From NCBI GenBank assembly GCA_964036045.1, contig OZ038378.1, positions 11,842,001-11,906,000 of the forward strand: a DNA stretch of 64,000 nucleotides, given 5' to 3'. The translations under genes were made by a program, and so were the position numbers. This document shows, one piece after another, positions 10,800 through 64,000 of this stretch. The stretch comes from Eutreptiella sp. 'Long Island Sound 2002'. Taxonomy: Eukaryota; Protista; Euglenida. Position 1 is the first letter of the stretch; every line of letters begins with the position of its first letter. Below the pieces are notes generated by a model. That model ran no database searches, was not told where the DNA came from, and saw nothing but the letters and a program-made list of their open reading frames with translations.

Positions 10800-13350
10800 C
10801 ACCCTCAACCTTCAGCATGGTCCCGCACCTCCTTCTCCCTCAAGAGGACGAGAGGGGGGCCAAACCACAAACCGATGATAAAGATGCAAAAAGATCCAGA
10901 GTTGGAGTGTTCCAGAGTCTGCATGAATGTGGTGGCTCCTTTTCCTCCCCCGTAGCGCCGCTGTCCGAGAACTCCTTCCTTTGCATTCCTTTGCATTCCT
11001 TTGCACAGCGGGCAATTGACGTGGTTGATTGCGCAGCAGAGGTCTTCCTCCATGACAAGACGGTGCCAATGAACCAATTCGGATGCTTCTGTCGTGCTTG
11101 TCCAATGCTGCTGACATTCTGAATGGATGTGCGGGCTTTTACTTTCCCTGTCATCCGCATCCGGAGGCAGTCCTTAGCTGAACATCAACCCGCAGTGCTG
11201 GGGCGTTGGGTGCATCGATACATGGGCCATACACTGCAACTCATTCACACGAATGCACAAACAGACAAACGAGAACCCTCAAATGAAACAAGAACCCACA
11301 GTGCATATACACAGACAGACACCAGGAGTGACGCGGATGCCGAGAGGAGGAAACCACTGGCCGCACACTGACACGGCCACAGCCACGCAGCCCCACAGCG
11401 TCGCCCAGCAAGAGCCACCAGCCACCAAGCGACACAGCCACACAGTGTCGCATGGATGCCCCCCCTTCAGCGCCACCAGAAGCCTGCCTACGTACAACTA
11501 CGCCGCTGTGTCGTCGTTATGGGGGCTTTTTTGGGATATGAGGGATCGCTGTTTTTGTGGTGCCAAATGGGAAGCCCACATCAGTTTGGCGTGATTTTTG
11601 TGAGAAAGTGGGGCTGTTCGATGGTTGTGAGGGTCGTATGCAGGCATAGCAACATTTTTCTTGATTGGCGCAGTGGGTGCAGCTGGTTGGTGAATAGCGT
11701 GGTGGTGGAAAAGGGATCTTATCTCCCCGCGTATACCCTGCATCCGCCTGGAGCGTTCCTGTTCTGCTTGATTGAACTCAACTGCCGTGGGCAGATCACA
11801 CGTGGTGGTTGATCATATGTGTAGATGTGTTCCTTGAAGAGGTGAATGTTGGGGATCACCAGCAACATGGCGTAAAGGATCGCTTTGACTACGCTGTCGC
11901 TGGGTGGTCTACTCATGAAAGTTTTGTCAATGAGGCTGCATTGCAGCGCAGAGGCGCAATGGGCGACTGATCACCCTTATCCTTTTCTGCCTGAGTGCGA
12001 TCAGGGTGTGCACATGCACTCTGCAAAGGCGTTGTGGGATGTTCTCACGGTAGAATGGGGAAGAGATGGCAACGCCAACATCTGGCAGTGTAGCTGGAGC
12101 GTTGTCCCTCGTCACTACCATGATTTATTGCCAGACATGCACCCAGGAGCCCAACACCAATGGCCGACCACCGGCACTAGCCAGCAGCCGGTGGTGACAG
12201 CAGCAGGGTTCGGGCGCCCTGGTTCAACCACGACGCTGCATGCATGGACCGCAGGCGCAGCAACCGAGCATGCCAGGATATGGACCTGCTGCAGCCGCTG
12301 CTCGCCTCAGTATCATGGCACACATTAGAGAGGGCAAAAGGTGAACTCTACGCACAGACCAGTCCACCAACAATGCACCGCTAGTTGTTCCGGGTGTGGG
12401 GAATAAGTGGCAGGATGTTCAGTGGACCTATGGGGACCGTCCAGAAGACCCTCCTGCTGTGGGTCACCCGCCACAACGCATGGGCCTATTGGAACGACCA
12501 GGGTGATGGTAGGGTCGTCTGGAATTGTTTAAGACGGATCTGAGGCGTTTAGAGCGGTGTTGTTTTCACTGTCGGTGACCATCAGGAGATTGACTTCGTA
12601 GATTGATCTCTTTGCAAGGGTTGGCATGCTAGCAATGGTGTGTTGTGCCGTGCATGCGTGGATGTGCGGCACTTCGCAAACTGTCTCTTCAAGCCATTCA
12701 TTGTCCTTCTCCTCCTGATCCTCATCGCTCTCACTCTCGTTGTCAGTGGTGCCCCAATGTCCTCATGGATGGTGCAGTACCCCATGTGCATTGGCCCCAT
12801 TGCGGCCACATGGCTCCTGCTGCCCCCTCTGTCCTCGCCACACGAGTGGCCCACACTCCCCATCCAGAAAGGCACCTTGCTGCAGCACTGGGCTTTTTCG
12901 AAGACTGCATGGGCCAAGAACCGCCTCTGGACCGTCCTGACGTACCTTTTTGTGCATGAGACCTCTGAAAGTGCACAGATCAACGTGTTCGCTCTGGCGC
13001 TGACCGGCCTCGTGCCGTTTGAGGTGTGATTGATTGCCCGTGATGAGTGAAGAATACTATGAAGTCACGCAAGTATAGGACACCAACATCACGGTGGTGA
13101 TCAAGTTAGCCATACCCTCCTACAAGTGCCCAGCATTTTTGGCACAATTTGCACAACCCCTAGCGGGTGCCATCCCCCAGGTACGGCGGCAAGTCCGAGA
13201 GCCGCAGCTACGTCATTTGCATGCGGACTCAATGAAGATCAAGTGCAGCATGATGGGGCGGTCTTTGATGCTAGAGATCTCGAACTACACGAGGGTCTTT
13301 CCCACTGTCTTGACACATGGGTTGTTTGCCCTAATTCGTGAAATCTGTGT
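10800..13350 (-). mobile_element. Heavily decayed, possibly near-full-length hAT-like transposase
   Basis: Minus strand: PTLDLFASLSSVCGLAPLSSS*GRRRCGTMLKVE (about 10805-10900) resembles a dimerisation motif; Cys/His-rich GCANCAKNAGHL...SHLKRHEAGQRQSEHV (about 12980-13170) could be an N-terminal Zn-finger region; many stops and frameshifts. Confidence 0.4.
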
Positions 13351-14110: not shown

Positions 14111-15629
14111 CTTTGAGGATTGGTCAGCAGGCGTGTGCAACACAGCGTCCCCTGTTCCATGGCCTGCCCTCGTAGTCGCCTACGACTGGGATCGCTTGGC
14201 AGGTGCCATGTCAATGCCAAAAGGAGTCGCCGTGCGCACGACCTCTGCGTACGTGCACCATGCGGACGGTCTCAGGGGGATACGGGCGTGGGTGTGCGTG
14301 GGGTGGTGCCGCTCGTGCCATCACCGCACAGCGTACGGAAGGATCGGCACTGCGTGGAATGCGTGTGGGCTGTAGTAGTGACACGCGGCCGGACCCGCAA
14401 AACTCTTATCCGAAAATCGGGCTTTGTGAGCCGGGGATTCGCAAGCTTAGCCACGATTCCTGAGACCTGTGCGGTCATTTTCCTGCTGGTGTAGTGCTTG
14501 TACGCAGACCTCCATGTGGTCCTCTAGTGACCTTGTGACTTCGGTGTGATGCTTGTTCTCATCACTTCGCTTGCTCCCTCCGATTGTCCGTGCATTGCGC
14601 AGGGCCTTACCCCCGCTCCATCATGTCCAGGGGTATCCTGAGTTGATAGGGTTTCAATTGTGGTCTCAGAGCCCGGCTTGTGTGGGCTGCGGGCGATGCG
14701 CTGATTGCAGTTCGCTGTCCCCCAACCAACTCACCCCATACCCGGCGGGTATGGGCGCAGCGGAGGCAGATGACGCCCTTTGGCGATTGGCTGAGGCAAG
14801 TCGATGGTGAAATGCCTCCCCCCCACCGCTCGGGCGCGTCCAGCCCGGTTGCCCTGACTTGTGCTGATCGGAGGCAATAACGCCACATGGTTTCGCACAC
14901 TGCGCACCCCCTTGTCCCTGCGTTGGATGGGGTCAGCGGAGACCTTCAGCAACGGGACATGCAAAAATGGGTGTCCCTCCCGCGGAAGGTGCGATCCGTA
15001 TGGAGCAGTCGCACGACGCCATACCATTTGACTAGGAGGAGCGGGGGGGGGGGAGGAGCTGTGACCCTCAGACGGGGCGCAGGTCTGCACCTCGCAGTTG
15101 GGACTGGCTAGGCCCTGTTGTTATCAATGATGCATGCAATAGGCAGCACCTGATGCCCTGTGAGGAATGCGGGAAAGATTGAGGCCCACGCTACGCCTTG
15201 ACCATCCAAGGGGCCCCATTGAGTGCGTGTTAATGCTTCTGTGCAACGTGCGTTGCACAGAAGCAACGCGGTGTCCCAGCTACACTCCGGATAGGGACCG
15301 TTTTGGGACCTGAGCGTAGATTGGACACAGGGCTAAGGGTGTAGCTCTGAGCGCGATCTTGTCCTGCAGGAATTAGGATGGAGGCATCTGTACGGACTGG
15401 TTTTTACTGGAGGAGTGGCTGGGGTCTGTCGCCATATTTTCCAAGAACAAAGTGTGTCCGATGCGTTGTTCTCCAATGCCCTTGTCCACTTTGTTGCAAC
15501 GCTCTGCAGGCGGTATTTCTGTCAGTGTCTGTGTGTGTGCACGCGCGCATGTGGCAGCCTGCATGGGCATTCATGTGCGTAGGGGTAGTCATGTGCCATT
15601 GCTGCGTTTTTTTTTTTGCTTTGTTGAAG

Positions 15630-15970
15630 CATAATTGACGTGAAGTTGAGTGGCATGCACTTGTAAGACCTCCGTCTATGGTTGTTTTGGAGATGATGTA
15701 GAAAGTGGTGGTATTTGTGTCAATTAGGGTGGGGTTACGGGTTGAAGATGCGGCAGTGGATGTGGCTGTTGTGCCGGATTCTCGCCATAATATGCCATTG
15801 CACTCTGCTTGTTTGAAACAAAACTGACGTGAAGTAGAGTGGCACACACTGCTGAAGCATCCGTCTGTGGTCGTTCTGGAGAAAATCCGCAAAGTGGCGG
15901 TATTTTGTGTCAATTAGGCTAGGGTTACGGGTTGGAAAGGCGGCAGTGGATGTGGCTGTTGTGCACAATT
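15630..15970. repeat. ~188-bp degenerate tandem repeat (satellite family S)
   Basis: tgacgtgaagt(t/a)gagtggca...gtcaattagg...gggttacgggttg...ggcagtggatgtggctgttgtgc at about 15635 and 15825; same family at 32256-32955. Confidence 0.8.
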
Positions 15971-16412: not shown

Positions 16413-17184
16413 CCATGACGCTCATGTCACCGGCGCACCGTGCACCTTATTCCCCTTCCACGGCAGCGGATGTGTGCCACGTGGATTTCGCGTTGAGATG
16501 CAGAGCCCACTGCAACCTTTCAAATGGAGCAGGACACCCCCACTTTCGTCCCGAGTGCAGTAGAGACCGTATTTCATTTGGGACTTGCTTTTGCATGCGA
16601 TATTACTTGTATCGATGCTTCCGGCAGCTACATCGGATTGCCGGCGCGCTTTGTGGGCAGACTGCACATAAAGACGTGCCATTTTGGCGTTGTTTGGGGT
16701 TGTTTGGTGGCCAGCTCCACGGAACTGGTTCGCTATCGCGAATCGTCGGGGCAACAGTCGCCAATCTGGGCCGCAGGAGCTGCAAATGCAGACGATTGCC
16801 TGAGGCGCAACAGAAGACGCACCGTTTGGGCTGTTGTGTGAGGCCCGTGCGCGCCGCGCTGCTTCCCCCTCTGTGACCACGTTTGTCCGTGCCGCATAAT
16901 GCGTGCACTGTGCAGACCTGAGGGAGAAGGCAATGGGTCGCCTCTTGGATTGGGGTGCGGTGCCGTACGTCGTCGGAGGAGATGCGGGCGTCTGTGCGCT
17001 GGCCGGAGCTCAGTCTTTTGGCGCCTTGCGGCGGATTTACGACTGTGTGGTCGGGCGCGCTCCCATAAGTATGCCACCATCTTGCACCGTGTCCCTGCAT
17101 GTTGCCATACCGGGATGGGGGTCCATGGTGCTGTGCATGGACTACTGTCCAGGGGTTTACCGAGAAGTATGACCCTGCAGGGGA

Positions 17185-17535
17185 CCCCCCCCCCCCCTCC
17201 TCCCTTGCGCAAGCACGGCCGAAGTCAGGGTAAACGATGGTCAGACCGCGTGCTAATTAGACAAGGCCGAGCTTACGCACGACCACCAGCGGTTCTTTGG
17301 AGGGTTGGGATTCACTACAACAACATTCACCGAAAATGACATCCAAACAAATGGAAGTGGGCTGCAGTCTTAAGCGCAATGTTGTTTGGAGCAGAAGCAG
17401 CTCTTCACAGGCACGAGGTTCAAAGAATTGCGTTTTTGACCACAATGATGGTGATGAAAAAAGCAACGGTCAGATGGCATTGCCGTGCCTAGACAAGGTC
17501 GTGCCAGTGCAAAAGGGCGGGGGGGGGGGGGTTCG
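17185..17535. mobile_element. MITE-like segment with imperfect inverted ends; related ends dispersed
   Basis: Left end ccc..cccttgcgcaagcacggcc versus right end aaggtcgtgccagtgcaaaagggc-polyG; related motifs at about 6535-6575, 7140-7165 and 56275-56305. Confidence 0.4.
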
Positions 17536-18993
17536 GGCCTGTCTTTCTGGCGTGATGGCTGGGGATGCAGAGGACCGGGAGAGGGAGAGACTGGCAGATG
17601 AATATGAAGATGAAAGAAGACAAAAACGTGCGTCTTATCACACGCACGGGCGCACTCTGACAGTGTATTGTTTAACGCTTTGCACGTGCGCATAGCAACT
17701 GCGGTTTCCTGTGCTTTGGTTGTGACCTTTTGCTTTTGGTCTTGCTCAAGTGTTTGGATTTCTGTCGCCCTGTCTTTTGGGAATGTGGGGATGCGTCATC
17801 AACGAGACATGCACAGCGCAGTCAACGTGGTGAGGAGAGCATGAAGAGACCCGAGACAAGTGAGCGACCGGACTTCTTAGGCAGCCGAGACCCTCAACTG
17901 TTCTTAACACTTTGTGAACAAATCACCGTTTTGACCCCCGGCCCCGTTAACATTGACAAACAGTTGGGAGGCAGGGGCGAAAAGCAAGCCTCCCCCGTCC
18001 CTGTCCAAGGTACGTCTGGCATTCCGACAGTACATCAAGTGTCACGCGGCGGAGCCGCGACACACATCATGCAGATTGTCCTACCTTGTCCTGAGCCGTG
18101 GGCTCCAACCCCAGTGCGTCCCACTCTGTGACCCGGCGACGTTTCGAGAGCGGGGTCGGGTTATTGGGCTGCAGTCGGCTCCCCAGGCGGGTCAGGTTAT
18201 CTGCCCCGTCAGTGCCACTGACATGAAGATGTGAGGGTACCGGAACTGCCCCTGGCCTTCCCCCGCCTCCCGGAGCCACACCAGACGTCCCTTGGCCACA
18301 GAACGACGATGGTCGTCACCCTCCAGAATCACTCTGGCATTGGAGGGTAATCAAGAATTCTCCGGTTGTGGCCAAAAGGCACGAGCCTGACCTGAAACCT
18401 AATCCGTGCCGGTGCCTAACGGCGCTTTGCTGGACCGATTGAACAATGTGTGGTAAGGGGTTGGCTCAGAAGACTGAGGGATCACGGTGGTGTCAATGAC
18501 ACGCAAGGAGAGTGTTGGCGGGCGGATAATCAAGATTTGGCATCAGACATGACGGCCCCTAATGGCGCCTTGGTGGACATTGTGGACAATCTGTGGTGCA
18601 AGGTAGGGTGTCGTGTGCCAGAATGATTGCGGAGGGTGTCGGCCGTCGTCGATTGCTGGCCAGGGTACGTCCAGCTCTGCTCCCGAGGCAGCAGGACTTT
18701 CAGTGTCATGGCCATCGTCGGATTATGGCCAAGGTTCGTCGTAAACCTGACCATGAACTGAGTGATATGTTTGGAGTGATCCCGGAGATTGACGACCATC
18801 GTCACTCTTACGGCCAAGCTGTGGCTTGTATGGCTTGTGCAAGGTACAGCTGGCCCAAGGTACTGCGGCAATGGTGCGCGGACAGTCTGCCTGCAGCTAT
18901 CTGAGCATTTGTTGTATGGCAGCTGCCGGGGTTTGACGATTGAGGTTTACATGGGATTTTCAAGCGGGTGCCTCGGAAGCCCACGGTAGCGCA

Positions 18994-19131
18994 GTACAAC
19001 ACACATGCCCTAGTAAAGGTAGACAAGCGTGCAGAGGGGGCAGAAGTGGGGGCCACGGCTACGGGGGCGCCACAGATGGCATATAACAAGTAGCACAGTG
19101 GGTGACCACGAAGCAATTCTCCACCATACTA
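18994..19131 (+). repeat. 138-bp dispersed repeat, copy 2
   Basis: Near-identical to 2808-2945. Confidence 0.9.
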
Positions 19132-21599
19132 TGTACCTCAAGTTGCGTACCTCAATGAGTGTCGCGGTTTCTCTGCTTTCGTGCCCAATTCGGTGACATG
19201 TTCCCTAGGGTGATTGCGGAGGGGGAACAACAATTGTCAGATGGTGGCCAAGGTCCTGCTTGCCCAAGGTACAGTGTCTACCAAATGGGTACCCGATTTC
19301 AGTACCGAATGTAGTAATGCATCAAGAAGTCGGGTCGGCGTTTCGACGCTGTGCTTTTGGCTGTGGCGCTGTCAGGGAAGGGGGTTTCTTGTGCGCTGGT
19401 GCGTGCTTCTTGCGCGGTGTGCTTTCATGTGTTTGCCTGTGGCATGGGTTGTGGGGTTGAAACGCACACTGCGTCGGCAGATTGCAACGGTGCGTCTGAA
19501 GCGTATTTTGAGAGGGACTCTAAAATGAAGCCTTCTGCACTGGCAGATGTACTGGTGTCCGCTGGCGGATGTGGGGATTTGTGGGTAGGCGTACCTTTGC
19601 TATTTGCAGGCTCTCAGACGTTCTATGACGTCGCCACTTTGAGCACGGCCGTGTGGCAAATGGATGCCAGCGCTTTGGACTCTTGGGACATGCTCTGTGC
19701 GTATCTCGCCGGGATGTTGTACAGTGCCGTTGTCAGGTGTCTGCCCCTGGATCAGCGCTCAGCCCCACTGTTGTGTGGCCGTTGGAGGGGTCGCAGCAGC
19801 AGCAGCAGCAGTTGGTTGTGGTTGTGGTTGTGGGTTTGCGTCGTCGTCGTCGCCGTCGTCGTCCTCGATGATTCGTGCTGTCGGTAATCCGTGTTGCAAT
19901 CCTGTCCGCACTACAGGACTGGCTGATACGGGCTGTAAATTCGTGTGAGGGGTGGAGTGGGAACTTGCGGCTGTTGAGTGCGCTGTGGGTTTGTGCAAAG
20001 GGTCTGACGGATAGTCTTCTGGGGGTGGGTGGGTGAGGGGGGATCGCGTCAGGAGGGCACCGCAAGGCGTAATGGGGGCAGCGCAGGGCGTGTGGGGGTA
20101 GTGCGGAGCGTGTGGGGCCGCGAGAGGTGACCCCGCGTGTCCTCGATGCTCGGTCTTTCACGCACGACGCACGCGCGCGCGCACACACACACGTGAAACC
20201 CAAACTCCTGGACCGCGTTGTCAAGCAAAGGCCTGAGCTCGCTCTCATCTGCTACAGGGGCACACCGCGGCGCTGGTGGCGCAGGATTTGTTCGTACGTG
20301 CGGAGCTTGCGGCAGCCTCAAGAGCCCGAAGACCGCCGGAAACCAGTGGATCCGGAACACAGAAGGAGTCTGCTGGCAGGGGCTGCGGAGGATCGCCAGT
20401 TCCGTACCTCTGCACCTTCGCGGAGCAGTGCATCGGGGGACAGGCGTGGCTTTGGCCCGAACTTGAAGTACCGCATGGGCTGAGGAGGGGGCAGGGCTTG
20501 AGAAGCGGACGGTGGCTACGGGGCGGTGGGGGCTTGAGGTCCCCCCCCCCTTGTTCCTGCCCCACTTCACCGAACACTGCGTGCCCCTGAACCGCAGCGT
20601 GTCGTCAGGTAATCGCTAACCACCGTCGGGTGGACCGCATCCGGCAGTCTGCTTCAGGGAAAAGTAAGGGCGGTCTGCGCACGGCCACCTGGTCCCTGTG
20701 TGGGAGGGACCACACCTGCGGAACCTTGGAAGCCCGCCGAGGGCCACGCTGGGGTGCCACACCCATGGCCCGGGGGCCTGGGGATGGGAGGGGGGTTTGC
20801 GGAGTTAAGTGCTGCGCCGGTGGGGGGTACCGGTCTATGGCCTCTGCAGTTGGAGGGTTTTTACCCATCACTTCTACGCCCCTCACCCTGTTGGTGCACC
20901 TCCCCTATCCCTGCCTAGTGCAGCTCACAGGACCCTCTGAGGGTTGGTTACGGCGGCTGGTGGTGGAGGGTGCAGTGAACCTCCCCCACGGGGGGCGCCC
21001 AGGTGCAGCCCCGGACACCGGACACCGACACCCCCTGAGCATTTTGGCCCTATGAAGGGGGGGAGGGGGGCTCCCGTTGCTGCTGCTAACCCCTGCCTTC
21101 TCGGCACTGAGCAAGCGCTGCGCTCAGCGCCAAAGGACTGAGCTTTTGGCAATCCGCAGCATACCTTGTTGTTGTCATGACCACTGTTTTGCAGTTGGGT
21201 TAGACATTCTTCGCGGGTTTTCCAAAGGACGCCTGACACGCACCGGCGAGTCAAGATCCCTTCCGAATCCTCAAAAAACTTCCGAATCCTCAAAAGCCCT
21301 CAGGAATCGTACCTGATTCTCTCAACCCTTCACTTTTTACATATCTGCCCCGAAACAGGCACGCATCAGCTGTTTTGAGTGCACACGCACGCAATGGGCG
21401 GCTGAAACCGTCATTAGTATCAACACAAAAAAAATAGGGGCAGAATCCACGAGGGCAAAGCAGAAATGCTGGTGGGTAAACGCGTAGTACGAACAGTGCC
21501 ATGTAGTTTGTGTGACCTCATTTTGCTGATCGTGGTGATTGGTGGAAGGGACTGGGAATGGGAGGGGGGCAAAACCTAATCAAGGTGCGCTAGGCGAAG

Positions 21600-34163: not shown

Positions 34164-61519
<27,356 letters not shown>

Positions 61520-62139
61520 CTTTTTGGACTTCTTATGTCACGGGTTGGACCTTCGGGGGTGCCTGTACACTTGCAGGTCTGCGTATGACCCGCATTGTTG
61601 CTCTTGCATGGGTTTTGGTCTGATGGATTCTTGTGCAGACCGCATCTTGGCCGTGCATGCTGCGCTGTCCTCAAAAGGGTCCGCGGCTTCATCAAAGACA
61701 CCCTCCTCCAGCCCGCGTCAAAGTCCTGGCGGTCAGTGTCACTGTCCAACGTGATGACATGTGCGGTGCCGATAAATCGCCAATCATCTCCCGTGCTGTG
61801 TACACGCATGACCATTGATATGTCCATACGATTTGTGAACTGCCCTGTGAATATTGCATCACCCGTTTGCGACTCAATGCCCCATTTCCTGATTGCAGCA
61901 CTTTGAATAGTCACGTGTGAGTGTTATTTGGGGGCGGGAGCAATGATGACGCGTACGATGACGGTACCGGGGGGGGGGGGGGGGGGGTCCCGTCGCTTGC
62001 GGCGGCGGCGGCGGGGGGGGTGTGTGTGTGAAAAGGGGATGTTCGGCTTCCGGTCTGCACCAGAGACATGCCAACGGCCTGGGGGTAGATGCCGTGCCAT
62101 GCACATACGACCGTGTGGACCGAGGGCTTTTCAGGACCA

Positions 62140-62430
62140 CATCCGTGCACACGGTGCACCGGACCGCACCGGGTACAAGGCCTGCCGGACTGCTGACAGC
62201 CCCTGACCCCCGCGGGGGCACACGCAGGAGGGAGATGCTGCCATACGGGTGTGTGTCCTGGGAAGGGAGGACCACCTGTACAGGGCTGCGGGGGGGGTGG
62301 GCAATGAAGGGGCAGGTTGCTCCAGGGCAGGTAGGGGGGTTGTGTGTTTGCCTGGTGCTCCAGGCCCCAGTGGGGGGGGGGGGGGGGGCAGGGGAGCCTT
62401 ACGCTGAGCCCATTGGGGGAGACAGGGGCC
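62140..62430 (-). mobile_element. SINE-like repeat family X, copy 3 (inverted)
   Basis: Reverse complement contains cacacacccgtatggcagcatctccctcc...ggggctgtcagcagtccggcaggccttg. Confidence 0.6.
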
Positions 62431-63574
62431 CGGGCACACCACCTCCAGGCCACAGGGGCACACTGCAAAGCCACCCCACAACTGCCGTGGGCATGGGGAT
62501 GGCTGTGGCACGACGCTCGACTGGGCGGGGCCCGCACTCCTTGACTGCCGCTTGGTAAGGGTGGTGCTGCCGGTTGGCTGGGCCCTCACGCTCACGGCAA
62601 AGTGCCTCAGGCAGTTGGAGGGGACCCGGGGCACACGGAGCGCTGCCCTGTCCCGGGACCTCCCCATGGGAGATGCCCGGGATGCGGTGCTACTGCCCAT
62701 GTACATGGGGAGGGCCTGAGGGCACACCACCCCCCTGTTGCAAGGGAGGGGGGAGGGTCGCGGAAGGGCAATGCTGCGGTGGGATACGATCTATGATGGA
62801 CTACATTGTCTTGAACGTTCACGGGACGTTCACATGTTGGGTTCAGGACATTTTGTCTTTCGTTCATTCGCGCAACCCACCCCAAAGCACTCTCCAATCA
62901 TGCACCATTTCAGGCTGGATGCACGGAAGTGTGTTCAGGGGGCACAGCCAGCACGATCCCCGTGCACCCCCCGAACGACCCTGCGGCTGAGGGGCGGAAG
63001 GCATACTTACCGTATTAATTAGGTGCTGAACGCCTTTCAGTGCCAAATGTGTCAAATGCACGAGCCCCGAAGCCCAAGGATTTTGAGGTTGTATTGTGCT
63101 TGGATGACAAAGGATGCCTACAGAGTTGGGGCGCACTAATACCAGGGGGGCCAGTCACGTGGTTGCATGCTTCCGGCCTGTCAGAAGGTTGGATCATGGA
63201 ACACACGAGGATGGATGTGCCTCAACGCTGCATACGCAAGATATGGTCGTTTCCAAGGCGCAGTAGGGGTATGAACAGTGTTGATTTGACACCTGCGCGT
63301 ACGTTTGGCCTCCAGTTGCCGGGTGATGCCTGAAGCCGGGGACTGCGCAGGAACAACAACAAGGGCATGTAGAGGATACAGGAGGCGATGTAGGGGGGAG
63401 GTACGGGGGACGATGTTCGGCCCACAGGGGTGGCCACTTTGTGCCCAAGGAGGGATGCTCCTGCAGATGGTGAGGCAAGTGGATGGCAGGTGTGCTCCGC
63501 AGGCTCGGGACAGTGCGCTCTTGGGGAGGGTATCATTTTCCGAGTGCCCTCTTCTCTCAGATCCCAGGTCCACA

Positions 63575-64000
63575 ATGTTCCGCAACTGCGGCTGCTCACG
63601 CCCATGGGCAGCCCTGTTGGTTCTGCTGCTTTCGCTCTTGCCGGAGTGTGGGTCCGTCAGCCTCGGCGGTGTGAATTTCCTGTACCCCGCAACCTTCAGC
63701 CCCGGAGAGGATGTCCGCATCATTGCAGACGCCAGCAAGGCCACCACTACTGTGGACACGAGCTCCCTCGGTGCGACAGTGTACAAGGAGACCGCCGTCA
63801 TTTCCCAAAGCACCACGGTGAAGGACTTGGGTGGCCAGCAGTTCGAGATCACACTCCCCATCGCTGTGACAGTGTCGACGGATGCCGCGTATGAAGTGGA
63901 GTTGAGGGTCGGTGCAGCTTCCGACCGCCAGCCCTGCGCCATCAAGTTTAACAACTACGGTCTGCTGCTGGACATCGACAAGTCGTTGTACAAGCCCGGA
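63575..64000 (+). CDS. Secreted alpha-2-macroglobulin / thioester-containing protein (TEP/CD109)-like, 5' part (signal peptide + MG1 + start of MG2), runs off the window end
   Basis: Open frame of 142 codons with no stop: MFRNCGCSRPWAALLVLLLSLLPECGSVSLGGVNFLYPATFSPGEDVRIIAD...YEVELRVG...GLLLDIDKSLYKPG; hydrophobic signal peptide, beta-rich domain, then the MG2 signature DK(S/P)xYKPG; acceptor-like AG 7 or 14 nt upstream, cacaATG context. Confidence 0.8.
   Translation, partial: MFRNCGCSRPWAALLVLLLSLLPECGSVSLGGVNFLYPATFSPGEDVRIIADASKATTTVDTSSLGATVYKETAVISQSTTVKDLGGQQFEITLPIAVTVSTDAAYEVELRVGAASDRQPCAIKFNNYGLLLDIDKSLYKPG

Follow-up and report, generated by a model that had tools for sequence, protein, structure and literature searches.

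Results

The open reading frame at the 3' end of the window

The DNA analysed in this study, hereafter referred to as the window, is a 64,000-nt stretch from the euglenid Eutreptiella sp. 'Long Island Sound 2002'. At its 3' end, an ATG at position 63575 opens a 142-codon frame on the + strand that runs uninterrupted through position 64000, where the window ends, exactly as the original prediction had read it. The translation begins with MFRNCGCSRPWAALLVLLLSLLPECGSVS, continues with FLYPATFSPGEDVRII and closes with DKSLYKPG at residues 135-142; the leader, the motif and the octapeptide are all present as described earlier. It is very probable that this frame (codons 1-142, 63575..64000, + strand) forms the 5' portion of exon 1 in a euglenid nuclear gene whose product is a thioester-containing protein of full length, about 1,560 amino acids. 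Its segments on the + strand are a predicted signal peptide (residues 1 to about 24-27, 63575..63655), a predicted MG1 domain (residues ~25-134, 63647..63976; AF2 model, Foldseek and phmmer) and the start of MG2 (DKSLYKPG, 63977..64000; Pfam MG2 and alignment with human A2M).

Directly upstream on the same strand lie the 3' end of an outron (63545..63560), in which a C-rich pyrimidine tract (tgccctcttctctc) precedes the AG of the trans-splice acceptor (63559-63560), and a 14-nt 5' UTR (63561..63574) reaching from the spliced-leader junction to the start codon. Position 63575 is the first ATG past this acceptor and, because RNA places the spliced-leader acceptor at 63559-63560, the start codon is fixed there. 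P0001, an ORF of 350 aa that is 100% identical to the window ORF, was called on a public contig with the use of in-frame ATGs further 5'. These fall within the outron and are therefore lost from the mRNA by trans-splicing.

By inspection, the leader is a predicted N-terminal secretion signal with an n-region containing R (MFRNCGCSRPW), an h-region (AALLVLLLSLL, including the hydrophobic stretch ALLVLLLSLL) and a c-region (PECGS). No lipobox was seen in the leader, which ends in ...LLPECGS. In the AF2 model, a helix of low confidence occupies residues 12-20, and the first beta strand starts from residue 25. Euglena plastid proteins likewise begin with a signal peptide. Plastid targeting of the thioester protein was rejected because MG1, which starts right at the end of the leader, leaves a transit peptide no space.

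Using the 142 residues alone, Pfam did not match MG1 and gave only a sub-threshold Glyco_hydro_66, phmmer against PDB returned no meaningful match, and phmmer against 1.84 billion representative proteins returned only P0001 and a low-complexity repeat protein. A word-based search using exon 1 gave the self match only. A language-model feature search, to be taken as a lead only, gave macroglobulin MG1/MG2 clusters with a score of 0.87 and 173 features in common. A chance open reading frame was excluded, as the frame continues on the public contig (segment L001, see below), where it scores against Pfam MG2 with an E value of 1.3e-13.

Spliced leader, transcription and host

An RNA-type run from 2013 (run X4) contains a contig of 491 nt that is identical to positions 63560-64000 and has the loose letters TTCTGAGTGTCTATTTCTTTTC in front of this stretch. 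The spliced leader of E. gracilis is ACTTTCTGAGTGTCTATTTTTTTTCG (PMC6242988, PMC5654406), and TTCTGAGTGTCTATTTCTTTTC together with G63560 matches it at 22 of 23 positions. Outrons of E. gracilis carry a C-rich pyrimidine tract and CAG (PMC11170887), and the acceptor at 63559-63560 likewise lies behind a C-rich tract. Although coverage by RNA-type data is limited to the initial 441 nt of the transcript, the gene is intact and transcribed at least at its 5' end, and its transcript is spliced-leader trans-spliced 14 nt before the ATG. As the transcript carries the Euglena spliced leader, this is a real euglenid nuclear gene and not animal contamination, and the non-animal host, which had been surmised from the surrounding DNA, is borne out by the same mRNA. 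No match to dinoflagellate or Euglena spliced-leader sequences was found in the window DNA itself.

Estuary metatranscriptomes (runs X6 and X7) also contain contigs that are identical to the transcript and start exactly at the spliced-leader acceptor, the contig of run X6 beginning at 63560 and being identical to the window. Barring cross-contamination of runs, the estuary samples appear to contain this euglenid, or a near-identical strain, in a transcriptionally active state.

In another run (X1), a 4.2-kb contig spans positions 62631-64000 and beyond. Its word depth is flat at about 20, compared with more than 1000 on a nearby repeat, so the thioester gene is present at unique-sequence depth. 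The repeat is dispersed, occupies window positions 62134-62600 about 1 kb 5' of the gene, reaches a depth of about 1,650 in run X1, and shows many joints and loose ends belonging to other copies. When the ten longest ORFs 5' of the gene (204-459 aa, window 8375-60968) were searched with Pfam, no family was matched, and the 60 kb before the gene therefore look like a repeat-rich, gene-poor neighbourhood. Within it, positions 46001-48000 have a GC content of 0.758, a strong negative GC skew and long overlapping ORFs on both strands, features typical of a simple-repeat array rather than of genes.

Exons and introns of the complete gene

The original prediction had only the N-terminus in view, and the rest of the gene is supplied by a public 1.3-Mb ENA contig (ERZ25074135) that carries P0001. 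From this contig we took 21 kb, termed L001. Positions 1-10588 of L001 correspond to window positions 53413-64000 with 99.99% identity over 10,588 nt and one gap, and window position x is L001 position x-53412. The thioester-protein gene occupies L001 10163-20878 (10,716 nt) and comprises about six exons that encode about 1,560 amino acids. All exon pieces are open and lie in the same orientation along L001. Exon 1 ends at about L001 10876-10885 (window-equivalent 64288-64297), its frame running to residue ~238-241 and reading ...DKSLYKPGQSVLMRALAID...FTVEEYVLPLFEVALKQP past the window end.

The clear junctions are all in phase 0, with CAG/GTGTG or CAG/GTAAAC at the donors and CAG/ at the acceptors (the slash marks the junction). 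As the consensus of E. gracilis is GTGTG at donors and CAG at acceptors (PMC11170887), and GTGTG is found at two of the three clear donors, the predicted splice sites of the thioester gene fit the E. gracilis rules.

For the borders of intron 1 and the donor of intron 4, no convincing candidate was obtained under either the GT/GC-AG or the CCAGG/CCTG rules (PMC11170887). The donor of intron 4 lies somewhere within the unconserved bait region. Intron 1 has no GT donor in frame and does not match the published nonconventional CCAGG/CCTG consensus (PMC11170887). Homology to A2M suggests KQP/SATTILE as its join, and an exact-match scan of JGI metagenome contigs yielded no spliced transcript across it. 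At both ends of the intron, just past the window end, lies a 20-nt near-perfect direct repeat, CTCAA[A/G]CAGCCCCACACTC (L001 10864-10883 and 11686-11705; window-equivalent 64276-64295 and 65098-65117). Intron 1 may be a euglenid nonconventional intron, or it may reflect a duplication left by an insertion. Intron 2 (3.1 kb) contains a (CA)n microsatellite at L001 13560-13630 with HTHTHT runs in three frames.

Domain order and reactive-centre residues

MG2, MG3, MG4, bait-region, A2M, TED (with GCGEQ) and receptor-binding domains all lie downstream of the MG1 region, as expected for the macroglobulin-type gene that had been proposed. Following MG2 on the continued exon 1, the Pfam matches along L001 are MG3 (11715-11948, E 1.5e-7), MG4 (15073-15705, E 4.9e-5), A2M_BRD (16550-17209, E 1.5e-13), A2M (17676-19826, E 1.2e-22), TED_complement over its full profile length (positions 1-312; 17676-19826, E 6.2e-82) and A2M_recep (20561-20878, E 6.3e-7). 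The last of these is split, its first half lying at the end of exon 5 and the remainder on the last exon. MG2, MG3, MG4 and the A2M domain, which is the MG just past the bait region, occur in canonical order; MG5, for which there is no Pfam model, was assigned by position. The predicted architecture is thus that of eukaryote-type A2M/CD109/insect-TEP proteins: signal peptide, MG1-MG6 with an inserted bait, MG7, CUB-TED-CUB and MG8. Neither ANATO nor C345C/NTR, domains of complement C3/C4/C5, was found in Pfam scans of the exon pieces, and the C-terminal domain bMG10 is absent by Pfam, its place being taken by A2M_recep. The composition of the protein is Ala/Gly-rich.

The bait consists of about 100 Ser/Gly/Ala/Pro-rich residues between A2M_BRD and FFPETWLW. 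The thioester motif, PFGCGEQTM, lies inside the TED_complement match, and its GCGEQ is invariant in an alignment of the euglenid protein with 14 relatives. About 110 residues past the thioester, as in proteins of the C3/C4B/TEP type, the catalytic His of VCHDEMMGG aligns with that of the hagfish C3-like VIHQEMQGG and of all the other relatives. In C3 and C4, this His converts the released thioester to an acyl-imidazole with reactivity towards hydroxyl groups. The receptor-binding domain is followed directly by the C-terminus of the protein, ...GSASGAAPCGWLLGLVCMACLLQLR and the stop codon, with small residues and then 14 hydrophobic residues; by inspection, the tail GSASGAAPCGWLLGLVCMACLLQLR looks like a GPI-anchor signal.

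Single-sequence AF2 prediction of exon 1 left residues 17-130 (MG1) unmodelled, with pLDDT under 30. With an alignment (A1) of 50 N-termini of bacterial A2M relatives, 24-29% identical to exon 1, the mean pLDDT rose to 84, and residues 25-134 were modelled as all-beta with about ten short strands (pLDDT 75-93), a model that leans on the bacterial N-termini in A1. Foldseek aligned 205-225 of the 241 model residues to MG1-MG2 of CD109, C3 and A2M (E 1e-11 to 1e-8), and phmmer aligned residues 26-238 to CD109 41-257, so that the sequence alignment extends into MG1. On the basis of these Foldseek matches and the CD109 alignment from residue 26, the assignment of residues ~25-134 to a predicted MG1 beta-sandwich right behind the signal peptide holds. 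The domain that had been described as all-beta-looking is thus modelled, together with MG2, as a pair of MG-type beta sandwiches like those of CD109, C3 and A2M. A bacterial MG1 profile aligned only with residues 93-142 of the euglenid protein (9.8 bits).

Among solved structures, residues 123-238 align to human A2M 122-236 (phmmer against PDB, E 5e-11), placing DKSLYKPG (135-142) opposite DKSIYKPG (134-141), which bears out the spacing given for human A2M in the original prediction. A 718-aa ORF piece, corresponding approximately to exon 5, has human A2M as its best PDB match (2.6e-89), with further matches to A2ML1, CD109, C4, C3, insect TEP1 and cobra venom factor; its 54 PDB matches (E <= 0.001) include no bacterial A2M.

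Such matches raise the question of whether animal DNA contaminated the algal genome or was mis-assembled into it, in which case the gene would be an ordinary metazoan A2M or CD109. The best solved-structure matches are indeed all animal, and the architecture is the animal one. However, the Euglena spliced leader is joined to the mRNA at a CAG acceptor behind a C-rich tract, the gene is found on a 1.3-Mb contig and on the 4.2-kb contig of a separate run at unique-sequence depth, the E. gracilis GTGTG consensus occurs at two of three clear donors, and identity to any animal protein is only 29-40%. In our view, contamination is refuted because the transcript bears the spliced leader, and we assign it a negligible probability.

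Relatives and phylogeny

The nearest database proteins are 30-40% identical to the euglenid protein. They comprise metagenome proteins, a EukProt transcript, the 'CD109' proteins of Symbiodinium natans and Symbiodinium sp. CCMP2592 and a protein of Effrenium voratum, together with partial 'MAG' A2Ms labelled Dehalococcoidia, Bathyarchaeota and Theionarchaea, and molluscan, fish, insect and priapulid proteins. As a search with P0027 revealed, the 'MAG' group comprises hundreds of intronless A2Ms of about 1,400 aa on Mb-size contigs, named Chloroflexi/Dehalococcoidia. These Chloroflexota-type A2Ms share the Pfam domain set of the euglenid protein, with A2M_recep and not bMG10.

Some Chloroflexota/Dehalococcoidia-labelled A2Ms carry additional modules past the receptor-binding domain: P0055, P0056, P0059, P0070 and P0077 have an extra C-terminal LRR block, and P0087 and P0088 have a PQQ-type beta-propeller. 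The combination of a thioester protein with LRRs recalls the mosquito TEP1-LRIM1/APL1C complex.

A tree was inferred with IQ-TREE (39 rows, 737 columns, LG+C20) and rooted on E. coli YfhM from NC_000913. The euglenid sequence falls into a clade with P0004, the Symbiodiniaceae and P0024/P0033 (support 94/94). The genes adjoining P0033 on its contig are split into pieces, which suggests that its host is a eukaryote. This protist clade has as its neighbours an animal clade of A2M/CD109-like sequences (97/97) and a CPAMD8/C3-like pair, all of them within a eukaryote group (95/95). The sequences from bacteria fall outside that group and are basal under the E. coli ECAM root. Forcing the euglenid sequence into the animal A2M/CD109-like clade cost 12.3 lnL, with a post hoc and marginal AU p of 0.039. 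The euglenid branch is long (1.2 changes per column) and its composition deviates from that of the alignment; the root, on a branch of length 10, is unreliable, and the direction of transfer is unreadable from the tree. Because of the long query branch, the deviating composition, the very long root branch and the marginal post hoc p value, we draw only the weak conclusion that the thioester gene is not obviously a recent animal import.

These placements bear on two further explanations of the gene's origin. First, a metazoan immune gene could have been captured fairly recently by a euglenid ancestor through horizontal transfer from an animal. Reviews confine the family to animals and bacteria (PMC12939704) and the top PDB matches are animal, as such a transfer would predict; yet the gene groups with Symbiodiniaceae and eukaryotic metagenome proteins (94/94), outside the animal clade (97/97), it resists being forced into that clade (12.3 lnL, at the marginal post hoc p value given above), and its identity to animal proteins, at 30-40%, is no higher than to those of bacteria or dinoflagellates. 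We therefore regard a capture of this kind as quite improbable.

Second, the protist clade could descend from a Chloroflexota-type bacterial A2M that has a receptor-binding domain and was acquired separately from the animal lineage, in which case the 'animal-like' look of the protein would reflect shared bacterial ancestry. The hundreds of bacterial proteins of about 1,400 aa that carry the same Pfam set, with A2M_recep in place of bMG10, are 34-40% identical to the euglenid 718-aa A2M-TED piece, and bacterial A2Ms are basal to all eukaryote sequences under the E. coli ECAM root. However, animals plus protists form one group (95/95) that excludes the bacterial sequences, and the basal position of the latter depends on a root on a length-10 branch, which is unreliable. 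Uptake from bacteria is unlikely, if less so than capture from an animal.

The description of the gene as 'animal-type' in the original prediction can thus be retained in part. It agrees with the architecture and with the best solved-structure matches (human A2M 2.6e-89), but not with the tree, in which the gene belongs to a protist clade apart from the sampled animal clades, nor with the large group of Chloroflexota-type bacterial A2Ms that have the same architecture.

Discussion

We lean, with somewhat better than even confidence, towards the view that the euglenid thioester protein serves as a surface-held protease trap or tagger directed against microbial, parasitic or predator proteases. 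Following the established mechanism of the A2M/TEP family, the protein would be exported via the ER and held on or near the cell surface, probably by GPI attachment; a foreign protease would cut the exposed, flexible bait region; bait cleavage would bring about the conformational change typical of the family, exposing the TED and its thioester; and the thioester, assisted by the His, would form a covalent bond with the protease or with a surface close by. A wall-less flagellate with a proteinaceous pellicle could plausibly use such a protein to protect itself against foreign proteases.

A different possibility is that the gene is transcribed and yet encodes no thioester trap, being either a copy in decay or the gene for a surface protein with a structural or adhesive role. 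The long branch (1.2 changes per column), an MG1 too diverged for Pfam and the Ala/Gly-rich composition could be read in this way. On the other hand, every exon piece is open, conservation extends to GCGEQ, the catalytic His and the TED motifs around them, and the TED matches at 6e-82 across the full profile length, making this explanation very improbable.

As to what these data mean for the family, a review of A2M published in 2026 describes it as known from metazoans and Gram-negative bacteria (PMC12939704), and the TEP superfamily is treated as the root of complement (PMC8359198). In the open-access literature, we found no papers on macroglobulin, CD109 or thioester proteins of euglenids, Euglena, Symbiodinium, dinoflagellates or unicellular eukaryotes. 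Tentatively, and as a possibility that we hold well short of likely, A2M/CD109-type thioester proteins could be an old, scattered eukaryotic surface-defence module, not an animal invention shared sideways with bacteria, and its protist lineage (euglenids, dinoflagellates and small eukaryotes) could represent a GPI-anchored, protease-triggered covalent trap or tag. If this is true, the subject becomes one of unicellular innate immunity, with the thioester gene as a tractable example in a culturable alga. Found in a free-living euglenid, the gene allows the origin of thioester immunity to be tested beyond the animals, namely: whether it was inherited from early eukaryotes; or whether it was transferred between eukaryotes or from bacteria. 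It also offers a laboratory alga in which to ask what a thioester protein does for a single cell.

Comparison with known systems

Human CD109 (PDB 8s3o, 9fx2, 9fx3) has the same domain order as the euglenid protein. In Foldseek, it ranks first against the modelled MG1-MG2 (E 1.5e-11), and it matches the 718-aa A2M-TED piece at 2.1e-79. Both proteins have a thioester plus the His and terminate in a short hydrophobic tail, which is a GPI signal in CD109 and a putative one in the euglenid protein; CD109 is GPI-anchored (PMC7960916). Their identity, however, is only ~23-35% and their bait sequences are unrelated. Unlike a member of the CD109 subfamily, moreover, the euglenid gene does not branch with animal CD109-like sequences (IQ-TREE; AU p 0.039, post hoc and marginal).

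Human A2M (PDB 6tav, 7von) is the best sequence match to the 718-aa A2M-TED piece, and the euglenid DKSLYKPG and FTVEEYVLPLFEV sit opposite its DKSIYKPG and FTVEEFVLPKFEV. At the catalytic position, human A2M has N, whereas the euglenid protein has His, as in C3. A2M is not known to have a hydrophobic tail. It is a soluble tetramer (PMC12939704).

Among bacterial proteins, the A2Ms of Chloroflexota/Dehalococcoidia (e.g., P0121 and P0077) are about 1,400 aa long and share the Pfam set including A2M_recep, and their N-termini align to euglenid exon 1 (24-29% identity) well enough for a confident model. They differ in being intronless and in forming separate clades, and some of them are fused to LRR or beta-propeller modules. 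The E. coli A2M, YfhM/ECAM, belongs to the same superfamily and has a TED with a thioester. ECAM is a lipoprotein. It is very distant from the euglenid protein (outgroup branch length 10), and no ECAM-type chain occurs among the 54 PDB matches (E <= 0.001) of the 718-aa piece. ECAM carries the extra MG0/NIE domains (PMC12939704) at its N-terminus, in contrast to the euglenid protein, whose MG2 begins, as it does in human A2M, at residue 135.

In the tree, the closest relatives that bear a name (support 94/94) are the predicted 'CD109' proteins of Symbiodiniaceae (S. natans, CCMP2592 and Effrenium voratum), which are 35-39% identical to the euglenid protein and conserve both GCGEQ and the His. 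They belong to another supergroup, the alveolates, and are automatic annotations of partial entries (633-754 aa). Since protist members are already on record in such annotations (e.g., 'CD109 [Symbiodinium natans]'), what is added here is documentation and context, with no novel type of system: the euglenid gene is an added member of the known thioester-protein family, in an unexpected lineage.
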